Positions 1-44,989 of a stretch of DNA of 64,000 nt are shown one piece after another. Location of the stretch: contig FLMG01002637.1 of the NCBI GenBank assembly GCA_900088475.1, positions 8,312 to 72,311 on the forward strand, written 5' to 3'. Origin of the DNA: Hyphochytrium catenoides (Eukaryota; Protista; Hyphochytriomycota). The position numbers and the translations under genes were made by a program. The stretch's first letter is position 1, and each line of letters begins with the position of its first letter. The notes under the pieces are model-generated. The model searched no databases, was not told the DNA's origin, and was given only the letters and a program-made list of their open reading frames with translations.

Positions 1-45
1 AAGAGCCCTCCTAATCTGCTGTTGGCCTCCTCATTCGACTCTAGA

Positions 46-18458: not shown

Positions 18459-20012
18459 ATGGGCTCAATAAAATCCTTTATCAAAGCTCTCGGGGCCGCT
18501 GTGCTATTGCTCGCATCAGCAGTAGATGCTCGACCTAATGGTGCCCCACGCTGTGCCATTAACCCGGATGCAATCTCTGGAGCTCATCAGTCCCAACCAG
18601 TGGATCTTGGAGCTAAACTGGTGGCCTCCTCTGCGACGTACACTCCTGGGCAGGTTATGGAAGTTACCGTCGAGGGCCCTGCGGAGTGGAAGGGTCTTCT
18701 TTTATATGGCGCCCAGGGCGAAGCAGAAGTCGGTCCTGGCAAAGCCGATGGCCGCAAAGCTCACGTCGGAAAGTTCATGGAGATTCCGCAGAACTTCAAG
18801 GCCCAAGCTGTTGATATCTGCCAGACTGCGGGGATTACCAATGAAGCCGATGGCTCAAACCCGGTAGAAGCCTCAACTATCACTCACGCAAATGGCCAGG
18901 CTAAGGGTGGAAAGGTCGTCTTTAAGTGGCAAGCCCCTGCCAATAATGTGGGACCCGTCAGCATCGTTGGAGCAGTGGCCATGGGTGGCCCCGGTGGCAA
19001 ATGGGGTGTTCTGAACCAGATTGTCCTTCAGCCTGCTGGCGGAGCAGCCAATGGTGCAGTGGGAGGTGTGGTCCAACAGACAGGAGCTAAAGTAGATGTG
19101 AATGGGCAAGCAGTCATTGACATCCTGCCTCCAGGCAGCGACTGTGGCTGTGGCTTTGGCAAGGCCACTCAGCAGCAAACTGCAGGGGCACAGCAGCCCA
19201 ACGGAGGTGTTCAGCAAACTACAATGGTCAACGGCCAACAACAGCAGCAGCAAGGCGGGGTGTCAATTCACGGAGCCTTTCAGGCTAACATCCAAGGTCC
19301 TTTCAATGGCTCTTTCGAGGAGTGGCTTATCCTCATGTTTGGCACTAGCGATTGGGGAGTCCTAACCCAGCAAGGCGGCGCGGTCGGCACTACGGTCCAC
19401 ATTGGGAACTCCATGGGTTCGTCTTCTCAAGGTCCAATCGGCTCCAGCACAGGAATTAGCGCCGGAGGAGTGCAGTCATCTACAACGGCCGGTACTGCTG
19501 GTAATGCACCTCCACAGCAAGACTCTCCGTCCTCGGGCTCTGCCAGCACAGGTATTGCTGGTAATGCACCCTCAAAGCAAGATAGTCCCTCTTCTTCGGG
19601 TTCTTCCGGCTCGCCATCCGCATTACCGAGTGGCCCGGTTCAACAGCAAGGTGCTCCCGCAGGAGAGCCATCTCCATCGGTGAGTGTTCCAGCCATTCCT
19701 GGCGTTGGCGCTGGTGCCAGCCAACAGCAGCAGAGTGTAGAGTTGCCTACAGGAGGGGCAACCTCTGGTGCCTCAGCACCTAGCAGCAACGCTCCTAGCA
19801 AAGCTTCTGGCGCCCCTGTTGGCTCCGGAGGGGCGTCCGCTCCCGCCGGAAACCCTATTCTTAACGCCGGTGCAGCTCAACAGGCTCCCGCAGCACCTGC
19901 CGGTGGCGCAGGCAATGTTGGAACGGTAGCTGTGAGCGACGACATGATTATCGACTCTAAAGACATCGTAGTGGAGGACACCTCGGGAGCTGGCAGGCGT
20001 CTTCGGCATTAG
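18459..20012 (+). CDS. Secreted Reeler-like domain protein with Q/G/S/A/P-rich tail, intronless
   Basis: Signal peptide ending ..AVDA, then RPNGAPRC, YTPGQ.MEVTV, WKGLLLY, HVGKF, TITH and FKWQAP..GPVSI, the Reeler motif series. Uninterrupted 517-aa ORF. Confidence 0.8.
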   Translation: MGSIKSFIKALGAAVLLLASAVDARPNGAPRCAINPDAISGAHQSQPVDLGAKLVASSATYTPGQVMEVTVEGPAEWKGLLLYGAQGEAEVGPGKADGRKAHVGKFMEIPQNFKAQAVDICQTAGITNEADGSNPVEASTITHANGQAKGGKVVFKWQAPANNVGPVSIVGAVAMGGPGGKWGVLNQIVLQPAGGAANGAVGGVVQQTGAKVDVNGQAVIDILPPGSDCGCGFGKATQQQTAGAQQPNGGVQQTTMVNGQQQQQQGGVSIHGAFQANIQGPFNGSFEEWLILMFGTSDWGVLTQQGGAVGTTVHIGNSMGSSSQGPIGSSTGISAGGVQSSTTAGTAGNAPPQQDSPSSGSASTGIAGNAPSKQDSPSSSGSSGSPSALPSGPVQQQGAPAGEPSPSVSVPAIPGVGAGASQQQQSVELPTGGATSGASAPSSNAPSKASGAPVGSGGASAPAGNPILNAGAAQQAPAAPAGGAGNVGTVAVSDDMIIDSKDIVVEDTSGAGRRLRH

Positions 20013-21169
20013 GAATCTGTCGTCTTCATTATTACTTTCCTTTCAAGAACGGTCATTCCCTCCTCTAAAATACAAAGTCAAACATCATTCGTCCCTCAGC
20101 TTCCGTTTCGTTCACTGTTTTGCTCATGAGCCTGTTGACGCACTCTACCTCTTTTGATAGCGAGTGATTGCAGTCAACTCCAGGCTTTAATAAAGTGAAA
20201 AACTGTTAACTATATGCAGAGTTTCTCAATCAGTTCTCCGTTAGAAATAGCATCGTCCTTTCTATTACCTCCATGATACCCTTCGCTTGCCATCATGCCA
20301 ATTTCAGTCCGTAACCCACAGCGCTATTTCTCTAAGCCTAACATCTGCGTAACCGCATTTATGATCTTCTAGCTATTTAGGAAGGTCTTATTCTCTTCGG
20401 AGCCCAAGACCATTCCATCTCCCCTTTACCACTCCTTTCCTCTTCTCTCTCCGTTTGTTACCGAAGTGCAAAAAGAGAATGAAGATGAGAAATGGACAAC
20501 CGAAAACGCTTGATTACGTGAGCTCTGAATCATCGTTTGAGAAGAGGGACAGTCCTAAGAACTGTGAGCTCAAAAACAAAATGAAGTGTTTTCGGAAGCT
20601 TACTGTTGACCATTGGAGGGATGTATAGCACCTATCTCTAGCAATCAAAGATTAAAGAAAGATCAACTCATGATAGGAGGACATACATAGTAGGTGAAGA
20701 CAGGAGGAAGTACCCGAAAGCGTGAAGAAAGCATTTGGAGTGGTAGTGCAGGGCTGGCGGCAGGACATGCACTATTGCTAAAGTTGAGCTTCACAATTAC
20801 ATCTTGCCAAGCTATTCTGGATGTGCCACCCGCCAGAATGCGGCAGAGTGTGTCCCAGGGGTAAAGCACTTGCTATTATCGTTGAGCTGACATTTACATC
20901 TTGCTAAAAGGCACTGTTGACACCGCTGGAGAGAGTCGCTCTTTCGACCACGCCCATAGGCCCATGCGACACATTATGTAAAGCACAGAAATGGACCATA
21001 GGAATAATCAGCAAGGAGATTGTTAACATTGTTTGACCATAGAATCGACAGAAGTAACAGTTCATATTCACCATAATATGTGTGAATGTAGTAAGTCATA
21101 GGATTCTTATTGCTAATAATAATATATAAAGGAGGAAAGGACACGATAGGCCTGCCACCCGCTTGTCTT

Positions 21170-21982
21170 CTACTTGGTCAGCTTGAATGACTGCGGTAAC
21201 ACTAGACCCGTATCTTCAGCCAGTTTCATGTGATTCATTACCACGACCACTGCGGCACTGGCAAATTCTCTTACTAGCGGGTTGAGAGTGGTAGATCGTA
21301 CCTTTCCAATGAGCGTAAAGACTTTCCCATGCGCGAAGCGGATGTTGTTGGCAAAGGCAACGTCAAAGTCATCACCCATTTTGCCCTGCATTTCCGTCAG
21401 GAATGCTTGTTGTTCAGCGTTTGGCATGCTGGGCAGGAGAACTCCAAGTTTGTCTGCAAGGCAACGCACTTGCTCGTCCAGGTCGAGATGATTCTTCTCA
21501 ATAGTCTTCGCTGCTGCCTTCACGAGGGCGGAATTGCCGCGCTGCAATGCTTGCTGACTGGCAGGAGCCTCCCAAAGTCCGGCTTGTCTCACCTTCACGA
21601 TAAAATCGATGTCGTCAGCGCTGAGGCCCAGAGGATTGGGCTGAAAATTGGTAAGATCTCCACTGGGTGCTGCAGCCCCCGCAGCTCCTGTGGCAGCAGC
21701 GCCGCCGGCAGTAGGCGGGAATGGGGAGAGAACTTGTCCGCTAGGAGGTGGTGGTGCAGCTTGCAGGAACCGTTGGGTGGTGACGGTACCATCAACGCTA
21801 CGTTCAGCAGGCAGAGGATGAGTGAAACCGACTGCCAAAACCACAAGAGTGACGGCGGCCAGCGCCACGCCAGCCACAGTGTAGCGCTTCGACTTCATCA
21901 GTTGTCGGAGCGGCAAGGGCTGTCGCTGTTGCTGAGAAGGTTGGTTATAAGCCAGCTCCAGATCACTGAGGTTATTACTCAT
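21170..21982 (-). CDS. DUF4142 (ferritin-like) protein with an N-terminal transmembrane anchor, intronless
   Basis: TM segment TVAGVALAAVTLVVLAVGF. Domain motifs D.DFIVKVRQAGLWEAPA, H.DLDEQVR.LA.KLGV.LP, G.DFD.AFAN.IRFAHGKVF and VR.FA......V.NHM.LAEDTG match my recollection of actinobacterial DUF4142 proteins. Confidence 0.75.
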   Translation of the reverse strand: MSNNLSDLELAYNQPSQQQRQPLPLRQLMKSKRYTVAGVALAAVTLVVLAVGFTHPLPAERSVDGTVTTQRFLQAAPPPPSGQVLSPFPPTAGGAAATGAAGAAAPSGDLTNFQPNPLGLSADDIDFIVKVRQAGLWEAPASQQALQRGNSALVKAAAKTIEKNHLDLDEQVRCLADKLGVLLPSMPNAEQQAFLTEMQGKMGDDFDVAFANNIRFAHGKVFTLIGKVRSTTLNPLVREFASAAVVVVMNHMKLAEDTGLVLPQSFKLTK

Positions 21983-24408
21983 TGTTTTCTGGGAATGACT
22001 GGATCTTAAGAAAGACGAAGTAGGAGGAATCCAATGCCCTTAGCTTTTGCCACGATTAGCTGCCGTGTGGAAGTGGCGAGCTGTAGATGGCTAGACAGAG
22101 AAGGCACGGCGCCAAGAGCTGTTGATTGGGCTCCGACGGAAGAAGAAGAAATGGTCTCCTCTCGTCCCATCCCTGTAGCCGCCCTAATCAAGAAGTCATG
22201 CAAGGCCCTAAGAGCCAGCCGCGGTTATCAACTAAGAACAGCGCAGGTCAAAGCTCAAGAGGAAGGAGAGGAGGCAGAAGGAAGAGACGAAAGGAGAAAA
22301 TTTGTAGGGAGACATCGAAAGGCTGAAGGACGAAGAGGAAGAGACTCAGGCAAAGAGTACAGAAAGGCCACGTGCCTTAGGTCACGACAGTGAAGAGTTG
22401 AGGTGAGAAGCTGCTGCGCCTGTAATGCAGAGCACAGCAGGCATCTGTACAAAGGCAAAGAGAGGGGAGGAGGAAGGAGGCAGTAGGGCAGGACATTCTT
22501 TGCTGGTGATGAAGGTTATCCTGTCCGTTTTGTCAATCAGTCATGTAAAGAGAGGACACAGAAGGACAGGGGAGCCTGCAGCTTGATTGTGGGGTATCTT
22601 CACTTCGACGTGTGATGAATGACAAGAGCTACGGTTGGCTATGATAATGTATGGCGGCTAGGCGGCTGGAGTTTGATAGGCGAAGCCCGTGTTTGTTGAA
22701 GCTACCGCTGAAAAGCAATGGGTATTATTAGGGACTGATTTACTTAGGCTTTACTAAGAGGATAATAAGATCTTAGTCTTGGACCATTTATTTGGGCGAC
22801 GAAGCTGGTGGAGGATCAAGTGAATATAAACTTTTTAGGCGCATGGTTTTAGGCGGAACCTTTAGAAGCATCAAGGTTCTAAACCTTTGTTGCTATGCCA
22901 CTATTATTAATGGGTAGAAGTACGATGAGCAACTAGGACAGAGAAGGTAATTGCTATATTACTACTTACTAGTGTTATATGATTTATTAGGCGTTTATCA
23001 GAGTGGAAGGCTGTTCTACTGTGAATTCTATTTGTAGAAATATTTGGGAAAGGCCAGGTAGGTTTGTTCCAGAAATGCATGTCACATTACCCTGAACTAC
23101 ACCAGCCCTGATGTGTAACCTAGATGGCCCTATCTATTCACTTGACCGAATCTGGCCTCTTCCTCCTCGAACTAATTAGGTAATGGCCTCATACTACCAA
23201 GGTTAGGTTTAGGGCTCGTACAAATGATAAAGTCAGGGAGAACATATATTTAGAACTACTTTAGGGAAATATGACACTTATCATAGATAAGCAGATAGTG
23301 TGCACAGTCGGGTGGTTTGCCGCTTCCCTTTGACCTACCTGGAATCACAGTCGGGCCAACGGTAACCCCTTCCGTTCTGACTTCTTCCTGCCACTGTCTA
23401 CCGGCCCATATTCTTCCGAATTTGTTCTGCTGGAATCTCAAATGAATACCCTTTGCCTTTGACTGAACCCATTTGGCAGTAGCTCTAATCCTCGGCCGTA
23501 CTGATCCGCAATACTGTGGAGTACCATGAACCCCTTTCGTGTAATTCCCATTGCTTAGTAAGAGTACATCTTATCTTTGGAACCTATCCTCCTATCCTAA
23601 TTGCTGCTTCAACTGGCGCTTTCTGGGTCGTTCGCCGAGACTAAATTTAGGTTCTGGTGAGCTGAACCCAAAACCCTTTCCTAAACACCTGAGGCCTTCC
23701 AAAGGTCTGGCAATTACCAGCCATTATAAATGACAGTCAAACAACTTCATTGCAAAAGACGACGATGTGGCGCGACGTTTGTCGGTTCTTTCTGGCAAGG
23801 GATACTTGTACCACATACTGTTTGCCCTTCAGCTCATAGAAATTCTGTTGCCATTGTTTTCTGGCACATGTCGCCATTAGTCCGTCCGTTATCTTCTCTC
23901 TCATCCCCCACCTCCTCTCCCTTCTCTGTGCCTGACAGTGCACCCAGCCATGATGTCGCTTCTGGTTACGCCTCAGCCTGTGGGCAAAGTGTTCTGCCAA
24001 GATCCCCTAACATCCTGCAGGTAAACGTAGAGTGAGCTAGACTTTATGCTGTCATCTGATCACCACCGACTCCTCCTCCTTCATCCTCTTCATAGGTGAA
24101 GGAAAGCCCTTACTCCTGCTACCTGTAGCAGCAGCTATTTTCCAACGGAGGACAGGACAAAGGTATTTGGACCCGGACAGGCAGTCCCTGCTCACTTTAC
24201 CATTTTCTGCAAGGGCGGACAGGGACAACGCCTGAACGCGATCATCATCCTTCACAGATAATCGCAGAAGCGTCGTTTACCACAGACGCTACTACAAAGC
24301 AACTGTCCAACCAACCCCTTCAAGTTTGTTCCTTTGTTGGGCAGTTCTATCTAGGTTAGTGGAAACTCAGGTTGCCGACTGTCCTGAACCAGGTCAACGA
24401 CTCTAAGT

Positions 24409-25923
24409 ATGACAATCACACGCCGTCTGCTTAGCGTTGCTGCAATCCTAGCAGTGCTTACTGCAGCTCCTGCAGCCGGAGCTCAAGATACCTCTTTCTT
24501 CAGAGCTCAGAGATCTTTGCAGGAAGTACGCGCACAGGGAAGAGGGGGAGGAGGAGACGGCGGGGACGGCAACACCGGAGGGAATGACGGAGGAGGAAAT
24601 GGTGGAGGAGGAAACGACAACAACGGAGGCAATGGTGACAACAATGACAATGGCGGTAATACAGGTGGTGGTGGTGGAGGAGGTAGTAATGGCTTTTGCG
24701 CGAACACGGGCCTTCAGCTAAGTGATGGAACCCAGATTCGCACTGGAGCGTGCAGTGAGACGGTTCAAGGAGCCATCCCAAGAGTAGAGAATATGGTATC
24801 AACCAGAATCATTGCGCCTGAGAGTGGTGCTGAGATTGAGGTTGGGGAGAGCTTCACGATCTCGGTGAAGACAAGGAACATGGAGCTTGGATTTTTCAGT
24901 GATCCTCAGCAGCAGTACTATGCCTCTCCTCAGAACCTTAACGCTCAAGGCATCATTCAAGGACATCAGCACGTTGTGCTAGAAGAACTCAATGGTAACG
25001 AGAATACTGACCCCACCGCCTTCAAGTTCTTTAAGGGACTTGATGGTCCGCCTCAAGGAGGGGTCTTGAGCACTGTAGTCCCTGGGCTCCAGAACACGGG
25101 ACAGCACCGTATCTGTACGATGACCGGAAGTCTCACCCATCAGCCGGTCATCATGCCTGTGGCCCAGCGTGGTAGCCAGGATGATTGTATTCGAATCAAT
25201 GTCGTTGCACGCGGAACGAAGGGTCAAGGAGGCAATAGTAATAATGGGGGAGGGGGTGCTGCCGACGCCCAGCAGGGAGGTAACAATGACGGGGGAGCTG
25301 ATGGCCAACAGCAGGGAGCCAACAATGGAGGCGGACAACAACAACAAGGAGGAAATGATAACGGAGACGGAGGTGACCAGCAGCAAGGCGGCAACAACAA
25401 TGACGGTGGAAATAACCTTACTGGGGGCGCCAATAATGGCAATGTGAACGTTGGCGGGCAGCAGGGTGGTCAGACTGGAAGCGGTCAAGAGGCTGGAGGA
25501 CAGAATGGAGGCAATAACCAACAGGCAGGAGGTGATACATCCAGTGGCAACAATCTGCAACAAGGCGGAGAACAATCCGGCAACATCAATACTGGAGGTC
25601 AAGAAGCTGGTGGTGGGCAAGCAGGAGGGCAACAATCAGGTGCTAATAACGGACAGCAGGCTGGAGAAGGCGCTGCAGGCAACAACGGTGGACTGCAGCA
25701 GCAGCAGGGCGGAGAAAATCCTACAGGCAATAGTGGCGGAGGATTGCAGAATGGTGGGCAGGAGCNNNNNNNNNNNNNNNNNNNNNNNNNNNNNNNNNNN
25801 NNNNNNNNNNNNNNNNNNNNNNNNNGAGCTGCTGGTGGGGCCAACAGAAACTTCTCCCGACAACGTACGGGTGGCTTCCAGCGTCAAGGCGGAGGTTTCC
25901 GTGGAGCTCGTGGAGGGCAGTAG
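24409..25923 (+). CDS. Secreted protein with a conserved fungal-type 'HQPV.MPVAQRG.QDDC' domain flanked by G/N/Q-rich regions, intronless (spans an N-gap)
   Basis: Signal peptide. Core motifs FC...G..LSDGTQ...GAC, G.IP, GFFSDP..QYY.SPQ.L...G.I.GH.H, F.FFKGL and RICTM....HQPV.MPVAQRGSQDDC.R. The 60-N gap at 25766-25825 makes the tail length uncertain. Confidence 0.8.
   Translation: MTITRRLLSVAAILAVLTAAPAAGAQDTSFFRAQRSLQEVRAQGRGGGGDGGDGNTGGNDGGGNGGGGNDNNGGNGDNNDNGGNTGGGGGGGSNGFCANTGLQLSDGTQIRTGACSETVQGAIPRVENMVSTRIIAPESGAEIEVGESFTISVKTRNMELGFFSDPQQQYYASPQNLNAQGIIQGHQHVVLEELNGNENTDPTAFKFFKGLDGPPQGGVLSTVVPGLQNTGQHRICTMTGSLTHQPVIMPVAQRGSQDDCIRINVVARGTKGQGGNSNNGGGGAADAQQGGNNDGGADGQQQGANNGGGQQQQGGNDNGDGGDQQQGGNNNDGGNNLTGGANNGNVNVGGQQGGQTGSGQEAGGQNGGNNQQAGGDTSSGNNLQQGGEQSGNINTGGQEAGGGQAGGQQSGANNGQQAGEGAAGNNGGLQQQQGGENPTGNSGGGLQNGGQEXXXXXXXXXXXXXXXXXXXXXAAGGANRNFSRQRTGGFQRQGGGFRGARGGQ
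25766..25825. other. Assembly gap (N run); others at 60499-60540 and 61012-61068
   Basis: Runs of n in the sequence. Confidence 1.
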
Positions 25924-28900: not shown

Positions 28901-29234
28901 TTCTGATTCCAGCAGGAAGATGTGGGAAGGAAGAACCGTGAAGGAAGCTGCCACCTACTCCGCTTACCGTTGTATCAAGGCCTGCCCTTCTGCTGCTCAT
29001 GGTTCCTGAGAGGGCAAAGAAAATGAGGAGCTCGCCTCTCTCCCTCTTTTCCACTTCCATCAGCTTTCGCTCTCTGTTGATCAGAAACAACAGACCTGGG
29101 AGGAGAGTCGTCCGATTGCAGAGAGGTCATTGTTCAATCTGCAGCCTTCCCGAGGTCTTGGTCGAAGGAGAGCTCGCACAGTTGTCACTAGACCCCGTCG
29201 AAAGCCAAGTCTACTTGGGAGATCAACCACAAAG

Positions 29235-30431
29235 ATGTTGTCTCTTGCCGCGACACAAAAGCTTCTCTCAATATGCGTCCTGGCTTTGGTCGCTTCAACA
29301 TCTCCGCCTGTAGGCGCTCTTCCCACCGGCGCCCCAGCTTGCCATTATAACCCCGCAGCTATTATGAAGGGCCACGGTCCACCAGCAACAACCCTCGAAG
29401 GCGCAAAAATCACGGTTACCCCGACAACCTACACCCCTGGACAGACATTAAAGGTTGTCATCAATGGCCCAGCTGGCTGGAAGGGTCTTCTGCTCTACGC
29501 AAGCAGTGCAGGGGCCGTTTCTTCAGGGGGTGCCTCCCCCATTGCCACCAATACTACCAGCGGCAGTACTAGCACCTCCTCCAGTGGAAAGGCCTCCTCT
29601 AGCAGCACCTCTTCATCATCGGGCACTGGGTACCGGCGGCTGCAGGTTACTGGCGGCGGGGGTGCGACGGGAGGCACTAGCGGTGGAGCCACTGGAGGTG
29701 CTACAGGAGGCACCACCGGAGGTGCTACGGGTGGTGCAGGTGGCGCCACAGGAGGTGCAGGTGGCGCCACAGGAGGTGCAGGTGGCGCCACAGGTGGTGC
29801 AGGCGGTGCCACTGGTGGTGCTGGTGGAGCCACAGGGGGTGCTGGCGGAAGCACTGGTGGAGGAGCTACTGGAGGTACCACAGGAGGTGCAGGTGGTGCC
29901 ATGGGCGGGACTAGCAGCGGTGGTGCTGCTGGGGGCAGTACTACAGGTAGTGCTCCACCAGCAGCCGGAGCAGCAGCTGGAGGCACGAAGAATCATGTCG
30001 GAAAGTTCATCAACCTTCCAGCCAAGTTCCGTCCTCAGGATCCTGCCAAATGCTCTGGGGCCAGCGTGAAGAACGAGGCCCTAAGCACAAGCGGTGCTTC
30101 GACCATCACTCATTCGGATGGATCCACTAAGGACAACACCATTACGTTCGATTGGGTTGCTCCATCTGCGGCATCAGGACCTATTACCTTCTCTGCTGTG
30201 GTCAATATGGGTGCTGTGCAGAGTAAGTGGATGCTGATGGAGGCGATGGCACAGCCCTCTGGCGGTGCGGGCGCCGGTGGTGGTGCTTCTGGAGCAAGTG
30301 ATTCCACTGGTGGCACCACAGGCACCACTCCATCTACCTCTGCGGCCACTCAAGCAACCAACACCCACTGGTCTGTCTGCTTATCAGTTGCTGCAGTTGC
30401 GATCAGCGCTGTCTGTGCCGTTGTATTATAG
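29235..30431 (+). CDS. Reeler-like protein, probably GPI-anchored, with the domain split by a S/G/T/A-rich insertion; intronless
   Basis: ATG at 29235 and signal peptide. LPTGAPAC, YTPGQ and WKGLLLY precede a ~165-aa insertion; HVGKF, TITH and FDWVAP..GPITF follow it. S/T-rich stalk and hydrophobic C-terminus (WSVCLSVAAVAISAVCAVVL). Paralog of 18459-20012. Confidence 0.8.
   Translation: MLSLAATQKLLSICVLALVASTSPPVGALPTGAPACHYNPAAIMKGHGPPATTLEGAKITVTPTTYTPGQTLKVVINGPAGWKGLLLYASSAGAVSSGGASPIATNTTSGSTSTSSSGKASSSSTSSSSGTGYRRLQVTGGGGATGGTSGGATGGATGGTTGGATGGAGGATGGAGGATGGAGGATGGAGGATGGAGGATGGAGGSTGGGATGGTTGGAGGAMGGTSSGGAAGGSTTGSAPPAAGAAAGGTKNHVGKFINLPAKFRPQDPAKCSGASVKNEALSTSGASTITHSDGSTKDNTITFDWVAPSAASGPITFSAVVNMGAVQSKWMLMEAMAQPSGGAGAGGGASGASDSTGGTTGTTPSTSAATQATNTHWSVCLSVAAVAISAVCAVVL
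29718..29846 (+). repeat. Coding 21-bp tandem repeat (GGATGGA heptapeptide), about 6 copies
   Basis: Unit ggtggcgccacaggaggtgca repeated with synonymous variation. Confidence 0.85.
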
Positions 30432-32823: not shown

Positions 32824-34677
32824 TCATCGTCGACGGGCCTGCTTTTTACGGAATCTTGTGTATGGATCCAGCATCAGCTTCAGAATCTCATTGTCGACAG
32901 GCTCCCAGAAGAACTGCTCAGCCATTTGTTCCCTAGAGGCAGAGAGAAGAGATTTTTTCATCGCATTGCTGATGTTAATCTCTAGCGGCATACCATCCGC
33001 TATAAACGTTGCCATCATTTCCATAGAGGTCGCCAGTCGCTTATCTGCCGTCATTGATTTTTCGCGGAAAGCCATAGATTGGTCGTAATAAATAAGCTTC
33101 TCGCAGCAGAACTCAGAGACAAGAAACGATTGAAACGTGGCTCGCGCTCCAATGGTACAAGTGTCAAGAAAGCTCTTAAGCTCTTTTGCGGAGTGCACCG
33201 GAGGAGACTCTGTCTTCTCCTCCACTTTGTTGTGGTCCCCTCCATGAATCTCCTTCCCACGTGGTTGAATATTCTTGTTGTTGCCCTTCTTCTCATTGGA
33301 CGGTATGATGCTCTTCTCTGGCTTTTGTTGTTCATCTTCGGAAACGGGTAAAATTTGATGTCTTGACACCGAGGTTGAAGCGAGTCTTAGAAACCTCTCT
33401 TTCCACAAATGCCACTCATTGTTATATGAAGTGACTATCAGAGACACGCTGAAGACCCAGCTGTAGAGATGCAGGCCAAAGGCGCCGACAATGGAGAGGA
33501 GATCCAGCAGATTGTAATAGAGCTCTGAGTCTGTCTCTTCGAGACTGGCCGGGACGAAAGAGTAGGTCGCTGTCAGTGCCATGGAAGCGGAGGCAGCGTC
33601 GAGCCGTCGGCGCATATGGAACGACTCTTTAACCTGAGGCAAGAGGACGAGCGGGCAAAGAATCCAGAGAAGCTGGTAGAAGACACAGTTGACTTGATCG
33701 AAAGAGGCCTGAGGAGGACGACAGTCAGAACCACAAAAATTTAGTACGCAAATGGAACCAGATAGAGGTTATGGAAGCCTAGAAAGACATGTATGTAGGA
33801 GATGGTGTCGAACGGGAAAGGAAGAGCGGCAGGCAGACAAACCAATAGACCTAGAAAGAGACTTGAAGACCTTGATTGGACCGATGTGTGCACAGGCCTG
33901 GCATACCCATACAGTGAGAAGAGCAAGGGGCATTCTTCATCGACCACCTCAAACCCGCCGCAAGAAAGGAACTTATAAGTAAGACATGTCGGTCCTTACC
34001 CCTAAGCTCGTCTGCTGGCAATGCTCGAAGTCCGCATATGGTACTGTCCAGTCCTCAACCTCAAACACACTACGAATTACGCCCATCCAGCTCTCTCCCC
34101 ATACAACCAACGCTAAGGGAACTAACAGCCATCTGCTCTCCAGCTTTTATCTGTGCCGCAATAGGAATGTCCGCGTGTTTCCGGCAGCCAAGTCCTGCTG
34201 GCACTTACTATCTAGATATAGCTTCACTGTGCAGTAGACCAACAGGAACGTGACTGGGAAGTAGATCGCGTCCCAGAAGAGAAAGGGGAACCAGCAGGGC
34301 GTGCTTTCTGGCATAAAGTAATATGCCACGTAGGCCCATACCTGGAAAGGGATAGTGCATTCGATGAAGACTAACGCTCGGACATCTAGGAGGTAAAGCG
34401 GGTACGTCTTCCGCCTCCGAATGAGAAGGAGAATGCTAGGGATGGATACCAGAAACGCCGAAATACAGATAGCGAGGCAGGTTGTCGAAGCCGTGGCTGC
34501 AAGCAAAAGAGTAAACGATGAGGAAGTAACCTCTTCAGGGCTCCCGGCGGTACCGCTTGCACTGCCATATGAACTTTCACTGCTACTGCTACTCTCGCTC
34601 CCTTCACCGCCATCAGCAACAAGCACTGACGAGTCGAAGGAAAAGGAAGAAGACTCCTGCCACAGGCTGCTTATCAT
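32824..34677 (-). pseudogene. 7TM-RGS protein (AtRGS1-like architecture) with one in-frame TAA; probable exons 34677-34000 and 33708-32824
   Basis: Seven hydrophobic segments result if reading continues through TAA 34149-34147 (..LLRHR*KLESRWLLVPLALVVWG..) and splices gtaagg(33999)...cctcag(33709). C-terminal RGS box: F.SFLVSEFCCEKL, FI.DG.PLEINIS, EILKLMLDPYTRF. An extra small exon between 33999 and 33709 cannot be excluded. Confidence 0.7.
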
Positions 34678-36362: not shown

Positions 36363-37747
36363 TTAGTAAGCCCCTCTGCGCGATGAGAAACTTTGACTAG
36401 GGCCCTGTGGGCCTCTTGCGACACGGAAAGAGGTCCCTCTCTGCGACTGGAATACTTCATTGAAAGAGGAGAGTGAGGCTGAGGAGGAGACTGTGGACAC
36501 TGAAGAGAGAGAGGACGCTGACGAACTTCTACGCCGAGTCTCAGCAGGCAGTAGAGAAGAGCACGAAGGTGCCTCCCAACGCCATGGCCTGCTGTCAGCA
36601 TCGCTACTGCTGCGCCAGGACCGTCCTTCTTCAGGTGGGGAGAAGAGAGCCTTCACTTTCTTAGCGGCAGATGAAGTCCGACTCCCTGATGACAGCTGAC
36701 GAGTCCTAGAGGAAGAAGAAGGTGATCCATGAGACCTCCTGCCTTGGGCGCCGTTTGCCGTGGAGTTGCGGCGCTGGAGAGATGGGTGATGCGTAGCAGT
36801 GGAGGAGGAAGGGTCAGATTTCTTATGGCATACAGTGATGCCGTCATAATCTGGGCCGAAGGTCCGCGCAATGGACTCGTACGACATGACCGCACACCGA
36901 GCCTCCTCGGCAGCGTCAAACTCTACTGTGGCATAGAGCTCGTTATTGACGTCATTCACCTTATCTTCTGCAGTGCAGTTACTGCGCAGACCAGGTTGGA
37001 ACACACGCGCAACTCGCACACGTCCAAAGCCAGAGAACTGCTCAGTGAGGCTGGAGATAGTGGGATTGGACTTGAGGTTGCGGATGACGATGGTTCTAGC
37101 TGCAATTTCCTCAAGATCAACCTTAGGAAGGGGTGCAATCCTTCTGACTCTGGTGGCGTCAGCATTAAGCTGAAGTGCCTTGGAAGTCTTCAGCGCTTCA
37201 ACAACGACAGACATATCCCTTGTGATGCGCTTAACCCGCTTGAATTCCGCAATATGCTTGATGCGCACTGATGATGAGAAAAAGAGGATCAGGGGATAAG
37301 AAGTAGACGTTAGAATAACCAGGTTCAGGGATGTTCGGAGGCTCGCACTTGCTACTCACCAAAGCCATTTTCATCCATCTTGCGGGTCAGGTAGTTATCC
37401 GTAGGGAGGCTCTCGTCGCTAAAGTAGAACTCAATTTGCTTCCGAATGGCATCAAGCATGCTTTCAGGAGAAAGAAGCTGAGCGAGTGGCGGTTGATAAT
37501 TGCCGTCCTGCTTGGCTAATGGTTGGTTGGGAGAAAGCTTCTTGTCGGAGGCTGCTGGTGTCCTCCATCTCTTAGGAAAACCATCTTCACGATCATCCTC
37601 ATGTTGATTGTTGCGAAGCCTCTGTAACGCTGGAAGCGCCGTGTGATCACCTTTCGTAGGGCAAAGGTTGTGTGCATTGCGAAAGAAAGAAGAAGAGTCA
37701 TGCAATGGTTCCAAAGCTGGGACAACGCAAAGCTCGACCGATGCCAT
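36363..37747 (-). CDS. LARP6: La-related protein, LARP6-like (La motif + RRM + C-terminal LSA/SUZ-C motif); exons 37747-37360 and 37267-36363
   Basis: La motif IRKQIEFYFSDESLPTDNYL..KM...GF|V.IKHIAEFKRVK is joined across intron gtgagt...cag. RRM: RTIVIRNL, FSGFG.V, YATVEFD. C-terminal RVARGPQGPSQSF resembles the LARP6 LSA motif. Confidence 0.8.
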
Positions 37748-39149
37748 TTTGTCTAATAAGAAGATTGTGTTGTCGGTAGTTCAAAGAGGAAAGAAGAGGA
37801 GACGTAGGTTAACGCTGGGTGAAGAGAAGAGACAGAAGAAGCTCAACTTCTTGTGGGGATAGTAGAAGTTGAGTTTGTCTGCTTCTGACCAGCTGATGAG
37901 GTCTTGTACTTTCTCTTGTGGAGAGTAGAGAAAATAAAGAAGTGAGGCGCTATTGCATCATAGGAAGCAGCACTGTTGTTGAGGATCACCAAGCATGAAG
38001 TCCGGAAAAAAGAAGCGAGATAGTGTTTCTAAAGTCTTACACTTTATTAGGGTTAGAAGGTGGGCAAATGCTGCGTGCACTTGCTATCATGATGAATCCC
38101 CCTCCTCCTACAGCCACTCTGGAAGTAAGCAAACTTGTCCGTATGCTTCACTTGCAAGGCGCTGTGAGGCTAGACTACGACTAGTAAGAAAAGGACTAAT
38201 AAGAAGGTTTTTAAAATAATCAAACTTATGGGCAGCGAACCATTTACCACTGGCTGCATCAGTACAATGCTAGTGCGTATGACTGAGTAGTCATAGTTGG
38301 GAAAGACAAGCACAGCAGTAGTGTAGACCAAATGTAAGAACTACAGAAGCCATGTAGCAAAGTTAAGCCATACACAGCAGAGGAGATAGGGAGGACATGT
38401 GAGCTGGAGAGCTCTAGCGGTTCTATTATTATTCCAAGCACCAGAGGCGCAGTGAAAGAGTTCAGTCAGCCCCGGAAGCAGCATCCTAAGGCCCAGACAT
38501 CAAAGGGACTGACTGTATGATGAGAACTGGTGACCAGATTCACTTCTCCTCCTTACAAGTAGTCTCTTGAAGCTCATCAAGCCAGTGGATGTGTGATGCT
38601 TCTGGTGTGGCTGTGGTCCACATCCTCGTCTTCTACACGAAGACGAAGAGACTAGGTAAACCTACTTGCTGGTGGTGTCCTAGGAGCAACAAAGACCCTA
38701 CAACTATGCAGAAGATCTCGATAATGATACATCTGCGAGCGAGAGCAGAGTCAACTTGACAAGAAGTAGGCAATCTTGGCTGCGAAGGCTGTTCGCGCTT
38801 ACTATATCTTAGTCCCTTACGCGGGCGATCAGCCACAGTCGTAATCCTGCGTCTCTGCCCTGCTTGATGCCCGCCTTTGCTGCCCTTCACTGCCGGGAAA
38901 ACTCAAGCATCTCTAGTCTGTTATTGGGAAAGGGATTGTTCTGTTTCCAAAGACAAAGGCAGATAGTTATATCACGAAGGATAGCTTAAGACAAAGATAG
39001 TCTATTACGAGCAGCTTCACCGACTTGAGTGAAAAGAGAAGACGAACTTGTTCACTTCTCACGAGCCAACAACACCGATGATTAACCACCACTGCCCTTT
39101 CACCAGGACTCCGAATAGAAATGCAAGGATCTATGTCAGCTTATGTTAA

Positions 39150-40010
39150 AATCTTCTGAGGATAGGAGGCACCGTCCACGGCAGATCTCTACCGCCCTGG
39201 CGAAGGCATAGTTAGTTAGTAGAAGTGCCTTAAGCTTCGAAGGTGGTCGAACGATTTGTCTGGCCTCAAAAGCTACCTGACCTTATGAGAATCTCTATAA
39301 AGTGGCCTAGTCCACGTCCTTTGTCCTGTGGCACCAAAACTGCAAAGGATGTTCAGATAACAGAGGGAGTGGCGAGAAACAGTCCCCTACTTCCACATCA
39401 GTGTACCGCAGTAGAACTGCAGCGCATCTTCCCCCATGAACCGGACTTCATGCTGTGCTTCTTATCTAGACCTCCGCCAGTTAACACTACCGTTCTTCAA
39501 AGAAGCTGAAGCCATAGCCCTGACTAAAGGGAGAGATCTATAGACACGAAGAACTTCTTCAGTAGACACTATCTTTAGAGTGTTCAGTTGGAGACGGTGT
39601 GGAACTCCTTAATGGTAAGACAAAGAGGATCTTCAATGTCTATGATGAGACTCTCAGCCTCTTTTTGCGGTGTGGAAGATGCTATTCACTCTCTACCAAG
39701 TCTGGTATGATTGAAGCTGTCGACCTCTTCAAAAACATACCTATCCTGATCACAAAAGGACAATCATAAGATAGTCACCCAAAACAGCCAAAGACTGATC
39801 AAAGAGAGGCTATAAGGTACAAACTTTGGGTCCAGTACTTTGTCCACCCTTTGATGGGTTGTAAGCCATCAAACGGCCCCAGGGCAATAATGATGTGTGA
39901 TGATCAGGAAACCTCCAGCAGAATCCAGAACACATTGCTTTGCTAAGCACTGAAAGGCAAGATACTTCGTAGATAGAAAGGGAAGTCCAAGGCTTGCTCT
40001 ACACATGTGG
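39150..40010 (+). mobile_element. Very degenerate Ty3/gypsy integrase/chromodomain relic (tentative)
   Basis: Stop-riddled fragments appear in the expected order: VVERFVWP (integrase zinc-binding region), LGPVLCPPFDGL (GPY/F-like) and KARYFVDRKG (chromodomain-like). Confidence 0.3.
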
Positions 40011-41476
40011 TGCGATGCGATGTAGAAAGGGACGTTTGTGTGAGAGTAACGGCTGCTCCCGCTCTATTATTGGCCTCGGACTACCAAGTCATTCCCGTTG
40101 TCACCGTGATAAGCTCTCCTTCAGTTGCCGTTCCCCTGAAGGTTTCCAAAGCCTTCTCATTGCAGGCTAAGAAAAGTACACCACGAACTAAGAGTAAGAA
40201 GGAGGCTCGCAATCTTTCATATTTTATCCTTCCCCCTCAATGCAAAGTATTCTTCTGCACCGTTGTGACCAAAGGACACAGACAAACCAATCCAGCAACG
40301 CATTTCTAATGTGGGTTCTATTTGTGGCAATCATTGCGTACGAGCTGTTCCCTGTAACACCATCTCTTGCCTGAAAGTCCGGAATGGGTGGGGCGGAGAT
40401 GGTAAACTGGACTCTAAAGTTTCAAAAGCTTCATCTCCTTTCTATCTAAATCTATGGGAAATCACTTCTTGAAAGATACGAATGTACTACAGACGCTGCA
40501 ACAAACGAACGAAGGTTAGCTAAGCAGAAACTGGCTCTTGATGGTCTGCAATGGCGTGATCAGGGCTAAGCTGCTTAAGATGGGTAATAAGACTAGGCAA
40601 GGCTGAGGGCAGCCTTAGACCCTAAAGAGACAAGCGATGAGTGGCGTTTGAGCAGTGATGGTTCTTCAGTAACGCCCCCTCGGTGTGAAAAGGAAGGTGA
40701 CAGAGAAGTGAACGGTAGAGAGACAGAGGGACAGAAAGAGACAAGCAGACGCAAACAAAGGACACCCAAATGTACCATCAAAGGGAGAGGGTAGACGGAG
40801 ACAGAGCGTCGGAGGAGATGAGAAAACCTGGAGAAGAAGGGCATTCAGAGAGAGAAAGAATCAGAGGAAGGGATGTGAATGAACGTTACTCCCTCTGCAC
40901 CGGATCTCCCCTATTTTCAGCCGCAGCTGCACCAAAAACTGCAGTATCCGCCTGGTCCTCTGACTCTGCCTCTCCCTAGAGACTTTGAGCTCTTGCTTGC
41001 AAAGACTCCTTTAGCATTCTGATTCTTGTGCATGGCGTTATGATCTTCCAAGTCATTGCACAGAGGAAAGAGCCGTTGTCCACCCCTGGTGGTATTGAAA
41101 AGGCTCAGGAGCCACTTGGAGCCAGCTCTTTTCCAACCATCACTATGATAGGAAGCCTCCTCTCCGCCCACGATCTGATCTGTCCCCAAACTCCGCTTGC
41201 GCTTGTATAATAGTTCTTATGAGTCTTCCTCTTCAATTCCCACTCACTCTTCTACTCCTCTACAAAAGACCAGCTGAGGCGTGATAAAAAGCAGTCACAA
41301 GTAATAGCGAAACCCCTCGTAGTGTGACTGTTCACCCTCACAGCCTGCTAAGTTTCACTCACAGCCGGGCTGTCAGCCGTCACTCATCAAATTTCCGCCT
41401 ACTGGCCACCTCTCACCAATCTACTCTCAACCAGTGTAACAAAGAAGAAAGCACGTCGTTCTCTCAACCACAGACG

Positions 41477-42073
41477 ATGGCACTTCTCAACAGCACTAAC
41501 GCTCTTAGCCTTGGCACTAAGGCGGCAGTACCCACACCACGCCGCCGCCATCTCAACCGCCAGCGATGCATCGTTGAAGGATGTCAAAAGTTTGCTAGAG
41601 GATTGGAAGGTGTCTGCATCCGCCACGGTGGCCAGGGCAACAAACTCTGCCAGGTCCCAGGATGCATTCACCAAGTACGCAAAGGAGGCGTCTGCGTAAA
41701 GCATGGCGCTGAGAAGAGGCTCTGCAGCAAGCCCAACTGCAACAGAACTCTCTACTCTAAGGGTTTATGCTTTGGCCACCACCGTTCCCACTTTGGCAAG
41801 AGCTCTCCTACCAACAGCCAGTCCACAGCTGTTCAGTCTGCACAAGTCCAAGCCCCTCTCGCTTTCAGATCACCTGCCGATGAACTCTTTTTCCAACTCT
41901 TCGATGTAGAAAACCATGGCCCCGCTATTGACCATGAAGCAGTTCTCTCAGCCTACGAGGGTGCACTTCTGAAGAGTACACCCGAGGTTTGCTTCTCCGT
42001 GGAGGAGTCAGTGTTCATGGACCTCACCAATATCTTCACTGCGCCCCCAAGTGATGCGGTTTTTGTTTTCTAA
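41477..42073 (+). CDS. WRKY19-like zinc-finger repeat protein (three C-x4-C...C-x2-H units)
   Basis: ATG at 41477. Units CIVEGCQKFARGLEGVCIRHGG, CQVPGCIHQVRKGGVCVKHGA and CSKPNCNRTLYSKGLCFGH, followed by an acidic/aromatic C-terminus. Confidence 0.8.
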   Translation: MALLNSTNALSLGTKAAVPTPRRRHLNRQRCIVEGCQKFARGLEGVCIRHGGQGNKLCQVPGCIHQVRKGGVCVKHGAEKRLCSKPNCNRTLYSKGLCFGHHRSHFGKSSPTNSQSTAVQSAQVQAPLAFRSPADELFFQLFDVENHGPAIDHEAVLSAYEGALLKSTPEVCFSVEESVFMDLTNIFTAPPSDAVFVF

Positions 42074-43339
42074 GCCACCACCCTGTCTTCAGGTCTCTCC
42101 CAAGTCTAGCGTTGTATCTGTTACTTCTTTCACACGTTCCCCATTCCCACATCAACTATCTGCCCGCGTTCATCATGCCAATGATGACAGCTAGCACTCA
42201 TCCCTCGCGGGATTACAAAGCTTGCGGTCATGAGCTCACACACCACCTATAATTTATGAAGATGACTCTACAGCATGCTGGCCGCCAATGCGCGTGTCCG
42301 TTGTATAATTCATCGCGTACCTTCTTTTTATAGAGATCAAAAGAAGAGGCTACCCTTACTATTCAAACCTTCAATGAAAAATTGTGAACTATCAATGATA
42401 TGCTCTCAGATGTGATTCTTCGGCTACCAGGCTGATAGGTTGCCACTAGGCCCTCTAAATTAAGTTCACAATCTCCCAGATAGAGGCTGACTACTAGAAG
42501 ATTTGCGATCGTGGCCGCTCTTGATGATTATGGAATACCTAGAATCTAGGGGAGACGCAAGTCATCCCTGGAAGTGCCAACTCTACTTCGCGATCCACAG
42601 TCCCTGCTGAGGTCTTTCTTATTATCACGTGAGCCACGACAGTAGTAGTTGTTGGGAAGAAAACGTCTTTCGAAGTAAGCTATTGACAGTAGTAAACCCA
42701 GATCAAGAGCCAACTGAGTGTGATTAGGATTGAAGAAATGATTCTTCTTACTCTCCTGAGCGTGATGCGGTATTCCTCATCATATGAGGAATGATAGTTA
42801 AAGTGCTCTTACCGCGACAAAATTACCTTCTAGTTCGAAGCTAACCTCCCATCCTTTCTTGTGGGAGTGATCCAGCGGCAAGAAGGAATTAATGTCCTTT
42901 TGCTGGTGAAGGTTGCTTTCAATGTCACGACCAGAGTCGCACAAGCTTACTACTTCCTGATATAAATAAGTGAATTAGCACGAGGAGCCATATCTTCATC
43001 CTTCTCATTCTAATGAGGGCCGGCTCCTTGAAGTCCTCTTATAGGCTGCCAACTCAAGAAGCGTTATAGATTAGCTTTAACGGCAAGCTGTGGTCGTTGC
43101 AACGTTACCACGCGAGCTAGGTGGTGTCTGTTGCCTTGTTTATTATTTATAAAAGAGAAGCATGATGTGCATCATCGCGACTGAAAAATAGTCTTATGAA
43201 TGAAATGATACACCAATGATATGTAGCCTGTATATTTTAAAGGTTATATAAAGAAGACTCTCTGGGCAATTGCGAAGACGTGCTGTTATCTTCCATCATT
43301 GCCAATAGATCTTTCGTGACAACTAAGTGTTTCAGTGGA

Positions 43340-44989
43340 CTAATCATCTTTCTGTCCACGAAGAGAACCATGCTGCTTGTCTCCTTGAACCATCATCATC
43401 TGTTGCTGCTGATTGTTCTTCTGTTCCCCGTTATTTTGTATGGGAGCGAGGGTATTAACGCCCTGGCCAGCTCCTCCCACCTGATTCTTCATGTTGTTGT
43501 TGCCACCGGCGGCTGGAGGTGGTGTCGTAAGCACCTGAACCGTCATAGGTGCAGCTGTGGCTCCTCCCTGTCCCTTGTTATTCTTGTTCATGTTATCCTT
43601 ATTGGCACCGTTGTTATTATTATTGGCTGGTGCCGTGGTGATGTGCTGGTTGTTATTCATGCCTCCACCTTTGCCCTTGTTGTTATTGTTGACAGGTGCA
43701 GTGGTCACTGCTGGTGCCGTCTGCTGCTGGTTCTTATTTTTGTCATTCTTGTTATTATTGGCAGGTGCTGTGGTCATTGCTGCTGCTGTCTGTTGCTGCT
43801 GCTGGTTCTTGTTATTGTTATTCTTGTTATTGTTTGCAGGCGCAGTGGTGACCGCTGGTGCTGTTTGCTGTTGCTGCTGCTGATTCTTGTTCTTGTCATT
43901 CTTGTTGTTATTGGCAGGTGCCGTGGTCGCTGCTGGTGCTGTCTGCTGCTGGTGGTTCATGTTGTTATTATTGGCAGGTGCGGTGGTGACTACTGGTGCT
44001 GTCTGCTGCTGGTGTCCTCCCATATTGTTGTTCCCGTTGTCAGCAACTGGTGCAAGAGTTATTACAGCCGGAGCAGTGGTCTGTGCACCTCCTGCTGGAG
44101 GTGCAGTGGTTTGCGCAGCTCCTTCAGCGGGCGGCGCAGTGGTCAAGACCGCGACAGTGACGGGTGCTGTGGTTGCTCCTGCTCCTTGTTGGTTTTGATG
44201 CTTCTGCTTTTTCTCAAGCTTTTTCTTGTTGTTTTTCTGTTGTTGTTTCTGCTGCTGCTGCTGTTGGTAGATCAGAACGCAGTCCGGCAAGTTCACATTG
44301 TTATTGTTGGCCGGGGGGGCCGTAGCTGCTGGAGCAGTAGCGGTAGCCGCTGCTGGAGCGGTGGTAGTAGCTGCACCGGCCCCATTGCTGTTATTCGGCG
44401 CGGTAGTTGGTTGCTGCTTACCGTTGTTGTTGGCTCCAGCGCCTTGCTGATCATTGTTATTCTGTTGACCGGCGTTGCCTTGCTGAGGCGGCAGCTGTGC
44501 TTTTTGAGTCTTGAGGTTGTTCAGCTGGTCGGGATTGTCCTTCAAGAACTGGTCCAAGTTGCAGGCAGGATCAAACCCTTGAATGGCCCCGACAAGCTCT
44601 GGATTCTTTGGTGGTTGTGGGCAAATCTTAGAGCAAGGATTAGCGTTGGCAAAAGGGTCTACATTCTTCTCTGCCTTTCGGAAGTTGACAGCGGCATCAA
44701 TACAAGCTTGCGGGAGGTTGTTACCCTTGGCAAAGTCAATCATCTGGTCCGCCAGGTTTTGCTGGTCACATTCACCTGCGCCGCCTAGCAAAGTGGATAC
44801 CGCTTGACCAGCGAAGGTTGCAAGCTTACCATTAATGTCGCCAGATACGCCAGTTGCGCAGTTTCGAATGCCATTCAGGATGCCATCTGGATTCTGCTGT
44901 CCGAAACGAGCATCTACACCGGTATGAAGCAGAGTCAAGTGGGCGGCAGAGATCGCTGCGGTGAGTCTGAGAATGACGGAGAGCTTCAT
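43340..44989 (-). CDS. Secreted 'RFGQ'-family Cys-containing protein with a long Q/N/T/A/P-rich repetitive tail, intronless
   Basis: ATG at 44989, signal peptide ending VDA|RFGQQNP. Motifs G.AVSTLLGGA..C.Q...AD, AEKNVDPF, IC...P..PEL.G....FDPA resemble a fungal secreted family as I recall it. Confidence 0.75.
   Translation of the reverse strand: MKLSVILRLTAAISAAHLTLLHTGVDARFGQQNPDGILNGIRNCATGVSGDINGKLATFAGQAVSTLLGGAGECDQQNLADQMIDFAKGNNLPQACIDAAVNFRKAEKNVDPFANANPCSKICPQPPKNPELVGAIQGFDPACNLDQFLKDNPDQLNNLKTQKAQLPPQQGNAGQQNNNDQQGAGANNNGKQQPTTAPNNSNGAGAATTTAPAAATATAPAATAPPANNNNVNLPDCVLIYQQQQQQKQQQKNNKKKLEKKQKHQNQQGAGATTAPVTVAVLTTAPPAEGAAQTTAPPAGGAQTTAPAVITLAPVADNGNNNMGGHQQQTAPVVTTAPANNNNMNHQQQTAPAATTAPANNNKNDKNKNQQQQQQTAPAVTTAPANNNKNNNNKNQQQQQTAAAMTTAPANNNKNDKNKNQQQTAPAVTTAPVNNNNKGKGGGMNNNQHITTAPANNNNNGANKDNMNKNNKGQGGATAAPMTVQVLTTPPPAAGGNNNMKNQVGGAGQGVNTLAPIQNNGEQKNNQQQQMMMVQGDKQHGSLRGQKDD
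43590..44030 (-). repeat. Coding degenerate tandem repeat, ~20-aa unit QQQTAPAVTTAPANNN(K/M)N, about 6 copies
   Basis: Directly visible in both the translation and the DNA (tgctggtgctgtctgctgctg / gttgttattattggcaggtgc units). Confidence 0.85.

Follow-up and report, generated by a model that had tools for sequence, protein, structure and literature searches.

A stretch of 64,000 nucleotides from the hyphochytrid Hyphochytrium catenoides (assembly GCA_900088475.1, contig FLMG01002637.1, positions 8,312 to 72,311 of the forward strand; hereafter the window, numbered from its first letter) was found to contain five uninterrupted open reading frames (ORFs) between positions 18459 and 44989, designated P1 to P5. 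They comprise two Reeler proteins (PF02014), one DUF4142 protein (PF13628) and two cysteine-domain proteins without a Pfam family, referred to here by their VAQRG and RFGQ domains. On the basis of current results, we consider it probable, though well short of certain, that all five are secreted or surface glycoprotein-like proteins, that at least three of their domains (DUF4142, VAQRG and RFGQ) are foreign and were gained by old transfers, and that the linkage of these genes is itself old and has been copied. An old date for the transfers is suggested by the host-like codon composition, by the acquisition of host-type tails and end motifs, and by the divergence of paralogues, which now share 55-80% identity.

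All five proteins combine one compact domain with one strongly biased G/Q/N/S/T/P/A region. P1 (18459-20012, plus strand; 517 amino acids) consists of a signal peptide, a Reeler domain at about residues 25-200 (29.6 bits, E 1.2e-6) and a G/S/Q/A-rich tail with a terminal RRLRH. P2 (21170-21982, minus strand; 270 amino acids) appears to be a type II membrane-anchored protein with a cytosolic head, one membrane helix, a P/A-rich linker and a four-helix-bundle-type DUF4142 domain at residues 123-257 (77.3 bits, E 1.8e-21). P3 (24409-25923, plus strand) is composed of a signal peptide, an RSLQE motif, a G/N-rich leader, the core VAQRG domain (24676-25278, plus strand), which is predicted to be an Ig/FN3-like beta-sandwich with four conserved cysteines and three conserved histidines, and a G/Q/N-rich tail; an identical layout was observed in its paralogue C195. 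P4 (29235-30431 from the probable ATG, in an ORF open from 29130, plus strand; 398 amino acids) has a signal peptide, a Reeler domain (32.3 bits, E 1.6e-7) carrying a 161-residue insert (29505-29987), and a C-terminal tail of 17 hydrophobic residues that resembles a glycosylphosphatidylinositol (GPI) signal. P5 (43340-44989, minus strand; 549 amino acids), whose relatives were recovered with an RFGQ profile, contains a signal peptide, a helical cysteine domain (approximately 44468-44908) and an N/Q/T/A/P-rich tail with 26-residue repeats. The Pfam gathering thresholds are 21 bits for PF02014 and 27 bits for PF13628; no Pfam match was obtained for P3 or P5, and an NCBIfam scan gave no match for any of the five.

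The signal peptides, the membrane anchor and the GPI-like tail were read by eye rather than by a predictor; the N-termini of P1, P3, P4 and P5 run from basic to hydrophobic residues and then to a small-x-small site, as is typical of signal peptides. Compositional bias was pronounced in the P3 leader (G+N, 77%), the P3 tail (G+Q+N, 74%) and the P4 insert (G+S+T+A, 88%), and part of these regions consists of in-frame tandem repeats with units of 21 bp and 78 bp. Thus, the five intronless frames, the secretion or anchor signal of each protein and the low-complexity G/Q/N/S/T/P regions, all of which had been proposed in a first-pass annotation made from the sequence alone, were recovered here. It should be noted that the P3 tail holds an assembly gap of 60 N (25766-25825), which lies 487 bases past the end of the core domain. 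Because this length is a nominal multiple of three, the P3 frame across the gap cannot be judged; the 32 codons beyond it are RGG-rich and resemble the end of the closest paralogue, C195, which fits a single gene without proving it. All P3 searches used only letters 5' of the gap, and no domain call depends on it.

The DUF4142 protein pointed to a bacterial source. P2 covers positions 2-137/138 of the PF13628 model, and a protein word search returned 27 matches, all of them DUF4142 proteins; the named ones belonged to Actinomycetota only (best, Sphaerisporangium at 53% identity), with no eukaryote among them. In a scan of 185,579 prokaryote species (one genome each), at least 599 relatives of P2 were detected, and the best 80 all came from Actinomycetota, headed by Thermocatellispora (55%) and followed by Planomonospora, Sphaerisporangium, Spirillospora, Actinomadura and Streptomyces. 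Seven residues of P2 (H165, H218, H251, E138, E256, D169 and D207) were invariant across 29 sequences. In a quick, unrooted tree the two host copies formed one clade (Shimodaira-Hasegawa-like approximate likelihood ratio test, SH-aLRT, 99), placed within a set of 23 rows that included 17 Streptosporangiales and lay apart from most Streptomyces. These sequence comparisons make a good case for one old actinomycete-to-host transfer followed by duplication, in which the gene would have entered once from a Streptosporangiales-type actinomycete together with its membrane-anchor layout. We found no function for DUF4142 in the literature, a PDB sequence search with P2 gave nothing useful, public assemblies contained no exact copy of P2, and a metagenome scan for host-type DUF4142 genes yielded no match.

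The VAQRG domain appeared to be fungal. A word search with the P3 core, which covered proteins of 110-352 amino acids only (the host copies have 453-862), revealed 112 relatives with E values of about 1e-59 to 1e-25 and coverage of 80-90%; approximately 60 of them were named, and all of these were Fungi, from Rozella through many chytrids, blastoclads and Glomeromycota to Ascomycota, where the proteins are wrongly annotated as 'ribosomal protein s17'. Identity to zoosporic fungi reached 53-59%, and an identical picture emerged from a language-model atlas search. The genome contains four VAQRG copies, all single exons. In a careful unrooted tree they formed one clade (99/93) within a clade shared with four Quaeritorhiza proteins (97/85), while the remaining fungal sequences roughly followed phyla. 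It is proposed that the domain was taken from zoosporic fungi. A giant-virus vector was considered and rejected for this domain, as no VAQRG relative occurred in 2.9 million viral contigs. The alignment conserves the four cysteines and three histidines noted above, and the AlphaFold2 model of the core (predicted local distance difference test, pLDDT, 88) matched only generic sandwich modules (Z 9-10, maximum 10.2), such as glycoside hydrolase accessory modules, S-layer domains and macroglobulin domains; because these matches are generic, no function follows from the fold.

For the RFGQ domain of P5, a word search found no relatives, and a profile of the host RFGQ paralogues was used to search 1.84 billion representatives of any length. 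This search recovered 380 relatives, 139 of them with E values from 5e-40 to 1e-10; 30 were looked up, and the 20 that carried names were all Fungi (blastoclads, chytrids, Glomeromycota, rusts and agarics). In members from Paraphysoderma and from read archives, the RFGN/RFGQ start directly follows the signal peptide or a KR site. The unrooted tree split deeply into two subfamilies (100/100), both of which contain several fungal phyla as well as host members: P5, C3104 and C4384 were placed near Paraphysoderma, C2973 stood beside Sorochytrium (both blastoclad fungi), and the host sequences were not monophyletic. Two transfers from zoosporic fungi are the simpler account of this pattern, since vertical descent needs two ancient RFGQ paralogues, each lost elsewhere; the domain may thus have been taken up in at least two lineages. 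A P5 orthologue with 67% identity and the same architecture is present in the read-archive organism ERR505057, which indicates that the RFGQ gene is old within the lineage. The AlphaFold2 model (pLDDT 87) is a small helical bundle, for which a fold search gave no convincing structural match (Z max 6.1). An additional RFGQ paralogue (C4393:5574-6061) matches in two separate frames, is interrupted by a TAG and is likely a pseudogene or a sequencing error.

These results accord with the earlier proposals that the DUF4142 subtype is actinomycete-like and that the VAQRG and RFGQ domains are known mainly from fungi: up to 55% identity was found with actinomycete DUF4142 proteins, and every named relative of the other two domains was fungal, the nearest being zoosporic fungi. 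The direction of the fungal transfers, from Fungi to the host, is one that we infer from these sequence comparisons.

Among the Reeler genes, the PF02014 threshold was passed by P1 and P4 and by a copy on C3217 (24.1 bits), although in P4 the match comprises the C-terminal half only. The two halves of the P4 domain correspond in the alignment to residues 2-65 and 80-172 of P1 and are separated by 161 residues. The insert is S/T/G/A-rich and contains an RRLQ motif and in-frame 21-bp repeats at 29730-29860; it may be either a loop insertion or an unusually long in-frame intron. Five Reeler copies were found in the genome, with pairwise identities of 29-46% and one pair at 63%. A PDB sequence search with P1 gave no match to a solved structure, nor did a metagenome scan return host-type Reeler genes. 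A secreted Reeler protein has been reported from Plasmodiophora, and a 'Reeler domain' family (OG17088) is listed with a Pseudofungi+Fungi transfer topology of uncertain direction (PMC13345962, Supplementary Table 4).

A second DUF4142 + Reeler + VAQRG neighbourhood was identified on C3217 (17 kb; 1-16977), with DUF4142 at 2449-3546, Reeler at 6408-8975, VAQRG at 12299-14887 and a fourth cysteine-domain ORF on the minus strand at 16204-16803. The cysteine domain of this fourth ORF matches the C-terminal domain of a Paraphysoderma RFGQ protein, in which it is fused to RFGQ. An N gap (10482-10598) separates Reeler from VAQRG on C3217; DUF4142 and Reeler adjoin without a gap at both loci, and DUF4142 is joined to the VAQRG core without a gap in the window. 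Other paralogues were all solitary within 10 kb on each side. Both genomic DUF4142 genes therefore have Reeler and VAQRG neighbours within 10 kb, for which rough arithmetic from 5 Reeler and 4 VAQRG loci in 61 Mb gives a chance of only about 2e-6 per gene, and linkage has persisted while the linked protein copies diverged to 67-72% identity. Because the neighbourhood is repeated on C3217, its linkage would be old and copied, at least for the DUF4142 and VAQRG pair. Neither Reeler nor DUF4142 genes flank VAQRG in Spizellomyces, in Quaeritorhiza or on two environmental eukaryote contigs; en-bloc transfer from these sampled donors was accordingly rejected, and the cluster was probably assembled in the host lineage. 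The first-pass annotation had described an island of five genes. A neighbourhood of four (P1-P4) holds up, with its DUF4142 + Reeler + VAQRG set repeated on C3217, but P5 is separate: it lies 13 kb away, past four unrelated genes that include the RGS, La-domain and zinc-finger genes, and outside the repeated unit.

Small modules also recur among these families. A cysteine module starting with VQCNAKQLEV occurs twice after an RFGQ domain (C3104, L008:1465-2904; C4384, L009:673-1980), and a related module (33% identity, E 6e-7) precedes the VAQRG domain in C810 (L006:817-2394). The presence of such modules in both RFGQ and VAQRG paralogues suggests that small domains have been shuffled among these families. 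With respect to regulation, the word CTCCTTC was present on the sense strand within 500 bases upstream in 8 of 10 regions (P1-P5 and five paralogues); in this genome the corresponding frequencies were 14% for random windows of 500 bp and 20% for the upstream regions of control ORFs. Being CT-rich and selected post hoc from all 7-mers, the word is a weak lead only. That DUF4142, Reeler and VAQRG genes share a regulator is not supported. Of the proposed horizontal assembly, then, the actinomycete or fungal affinity of DUF4142, VAQRG and RFGQ has stood, but not the suggested co-regulation by the adjacent zinc-finger gene, as no link between that ORF (41324-42073) and the five genes was found.

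Arg-x-Leu motifs are a further feature of these proteins. RxL[Q/R] occurred 8 times in 13 proteins vs 1.3 expected from shuffles, and 5 of the 8 occurrences were in the last 16 residues. The corresponding tails are RRLRH (P1, 19998-20009), RRLRG (L016:9204-9218), RNLRAM (L008:2884-2904), RSLRAR (L009:673-693) and RRMRAR (L004:194-211), and an RSLRA C-terminus is kept in the ERR505057 orthologue (67% identity). In P3, the RSLQE motif is found ten residues past the signal peptide. These Arg-x-Leu-Arg-type tails are shared by secreted proteins of this genome that are otherwise unrelated. The C-terminal Arg-x-Leu tail may be a processing or sorting signal. An assignment to the oomycete RxLR effectors, in which RxLR, frequently with a subsequent EER, falls within some 30-60 residues of the signal peptide, was rejected: P3 alone has an N-terminal motif, which is RSLQ rather than RxLR, and the other motifs are C-terminal or internal. 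The wall proteins of diatoms lose an RXL pro-domain to a protease (PMC5525289), and by analogy a stramenopile processing step related to diatom RXL cleavage is a reasonable guess.

From the sorting signals alone, we infer a cell-surface or secreted location for the five proteins. They could be surface or wall glycoproteins in which a small binding-type domain is displayed on a flexible, probably glycosylated spacer; P2 would be anchored by its type II helix and P4 by its GPI-like tail, whereas P1, P3 and P5 would be released. Adaptation to the host may be read from the codon use, which is host-like, from the biased regions that were added and from the Arg-x-Leu motifs.

The host, Hyphochytrium catenoides, is a pseudofungus belonging to the stramenopiles and not a fungus. 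Rhodopsin exons of the genome were nearly identical to two PDB chains, HcCCR (8gi9; 98 of 99 residues) and HcKCR2 (8h87; 100 of 100), and the 'Hc' channelrhodopsins derive from this species (bioRxiv 10.1101/2022.09.26.509509). The three channelrhodopsin loci of the genome, HcCCR, HcKCR2 and a third, are located at C3799:6417-7183 and at C2531:7223-8107 and 15707-16882. The genome has 3.64 introns per gene (PMC5795050), and the neighbours of the five ORFs, matched exon by exon, are spliced genes. GH47 (49799-52035, minus strand) matches in at least five pieces and S9A (56678-57611, plus strand) also matches in pieces, both as intron-split host genes, and in the La-domain gene (36363-37747) an intron interrupts the La domain at 37268/37352. 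At 32824-34677 an RGS exon adjoins a hydrophobic one, and the zinc-finger ORF on the plus strand (41324-42073) is of the WRKY19 type (PF24906, E 5.6e-15). Thus, both a non-fungal host and intron-rich neighbours, as presumed in the earlier annotation, are borne out.

Several alternatives to transfer have to be weighed. One is that the scaffolder fused contaminant DNA of fungal or bacterial type to host sequence, for which the nature of the assembly offers an opening: it is a short-read, scaffolded assembly, and the window has three N gaps, one of them inside P3. But the gap-free stretch 1-25765 holds P1, P2 and the P3 core along with spliced receptor genes, and the gap-free stretch 25826-60498 holds P4 and P5 together with the RGS, La-domain, zinc-finger and GH47 genes and the 5' part of S9A. 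The GC content at third codon positions (GC3) of the five genes is 0.46-0.56 (0.54 in P2), compared with 0.49-0.70 in host exons, and is far from actinomycete values. Because the five genes share gap-free stretches with intron-bearing host genes and have a host-like GC3, the scaffold is without sign of contamination, and no sign was seen of the mis-join against which the first-pass annotation had cautioned. Considering also that paralogues are present on eight other scaffolds and that the contamination screens of the genome authors were negative (PMC5795050), we regard this explanation as very improbable. A more serious alternative is vertical descent with massive loss, in which VAQRG, RFGQ and Reeler would be ancient and would survive in Fungi, hyphochytrids and perhaps unsampled protists, and only DUF4142 would be foreign. 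A number of observations weigh in this direction or otherwise against the transfer reading. Every tree is unrooted; the host VAQRG clade is one side of a branch, and a root placed there would mean vertical descent with loss elsewhere. The DUF4142 tree was built by a quick method and drew a long-branch warning, and the origin of the Reeler genes lies outside the transfer trees, which cover DUF4142, VAQRG and RFGQ. Only about half of the matches carry names, the rest being metagenome or read-archive proteins from environmental organisms, and long oomycete or other stramenopile VAQRG relatives (>352 amino acids) were outside the reach of the word search. Fungal VAQRG genes have introns and the host copies do not, which transfer at the DNA level alone does not explain; the gene spans 713 bp for 216 amino acids in Spizellomyces and 1248 bp for 325 amino acids in Quaeritorhiza. 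The age of the RFGQ gene in the lineage, as judged from the ERR505057 orthologue, also suits vertical descent. On the other hand, the identity of the host VAQRG proteins to those of zoosporic fungi is as high as that between fungal phyla, the host RFGQ members fall into two deep multi-phylum subfamilies and would require two paralogues each lost in all other eukaryotes, and no named non-fungal eukaryote was present among the approximately 80 named VAQRG and RFGQ matches (within the length range of the VAQRG search). In addition, a published screen reports a Fungi-to-Pseudofungi transfer 'highway' (PMC13345962). Vertical descent is therefore considered unlikely.

Even if the transfers are real, the island may be without functional meaning, reflecting a chance neighbourhood that was copied once or permissive landing regions, with no co-regulation or joint function; the chance that this is so seems to us only a little below even. 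It is favored by the differing gene order and strands of the window cluster and C3217, by the fungal and environmental homologues that have neither Reeler nor DUF4142 as a neighbour, by the unrelated genes that separate P5 from the others, and by the fact that the sole shared upstream word is the post hoc, CT-rich CTCCTTC. The order and strand differences also count against a linkage that was simply copied, as does the divergence of the cluster Reeler genes, which are 41% identical to each other and 43-46% identical to solitary copies. A simple block duplication fits DUF4142 and VAQRG and fails for Reeler, whose cluster copies are not mutually closest; taken together, order, strands and Reeler distances indicate that the history exceeds one clean block duplication. 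Against an island without meaning stand the roughly estimated rarity of finding both DUF4142 genes near Reeler and VAQRG, the persistence of this linkage through protein divergence, and the recurring cysteine modules shuffled among these families. The stronger proposal, that the DUF4142/Reeler/VAQRG cluster is held by selection and joins actinobacterial and zoosporic-fungal parts with host stalks and a C-terminal RxLR-type tail to give fungus-like wall or adhesion traits, is in our view doubtful. Old transfers of at least three domains, with a linkage that is old and copied, remain the reading that we favor.

Pseudofungi are already known to have received genes from both fungi and bacteria: 16 Fungi-to-Pseudofungi transfers, some of them into H. 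catenoides, have been described (PMC13345962), and oomycete cases of fungal gene transfer have been reviewed (PMC4447370). Three unannotated clusters of the former study (OG9023, OG35382 and OG4574) may or may not include the present families. New here would be the family-level sequence evidence for two unannotated fungal cysteine-domain families in H. catenoides, as well as the confirmed identity of the host, the mixed-origin neighbourhood occurring twice, the module shuffling and the C-terminal RxLR-like tails. Hyphochytrids and oomycetes resemble fungi in appearance and feeding and are yet unrelated to them, which raises the question of how much of this likeness was borrowed and how much reinvented. 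Non-enzymatic surface modules without annotation are a class that annotation-based screens can miss. If a selected surface cluster were true, it would represent a tangible genetic component of the convergent 'fungal' lifestyle, and a functional cluster would make it possible to test how wall or adhesion parts of foreign origin are accommodated in a new host by adding stalks, anchors and end motifs. A non-functional one would still contribute several well-supported transfer candidates to the known pattern.

Insect Reeler proteins have a microbe-binding role. In reelin and F-spondin, as well as in small secreted insect Reeler proteins, the Reeler domain directly follows the signal peptide and has two conserved cysteines, as in P1 and P4, whereas the host copies are weak-scoring (24-40 bits) and have long low-complexity tails and, in one case, a domain split by 161 residues. 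P2 shares 46-55% domain identity with the membrane-anchored DUF4142 proteins of Streptosporangiales and Streptomyces, together with their N-terminal anchor-linker-domain layout and invariant His/Glu/Asp residues; in contrast with these, the host genes are nuclear, have host codon composition and a longer Q/P/A-rich head and linker, and exist as two diverged copies. P3 has in common with the fungal family that frequently carries the erroneous label 'ribosomal protein s17' or 'TFIID subunit 15' a core of 170 residues, including four cysteines, a GHxH motif and the HQPVIMPVAQRGSQDDC block, although the fungal proteins have 200-350 amino acids and the host copies 453-862, with long G/Q/N- or T/A/P-rich regions. 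The diatom RXL pro-domains and the N-terminal RxLR of oomycetes are likewise stramenopile secretory Arg-x-Leu motifs at processing points, as the host motifs may be, but most of the latter are at the extreme C-terminus, a position undescribed for either system. Finally, the published Fungi-to-Pseudofungi transfers involve the same recipient group, often chytrid donors, secreted or osmotrophy-linked genes and recipients nested in fungi, features that the present genes would share. Those cases are mostly enzymes and transporters, whereas the host genes encode non-enzymatic cysteine domains on low-complexity stalks, and their clustering with a gene of putative bacterial origin at two loci is a feature of this host that has not been described in the published cases.

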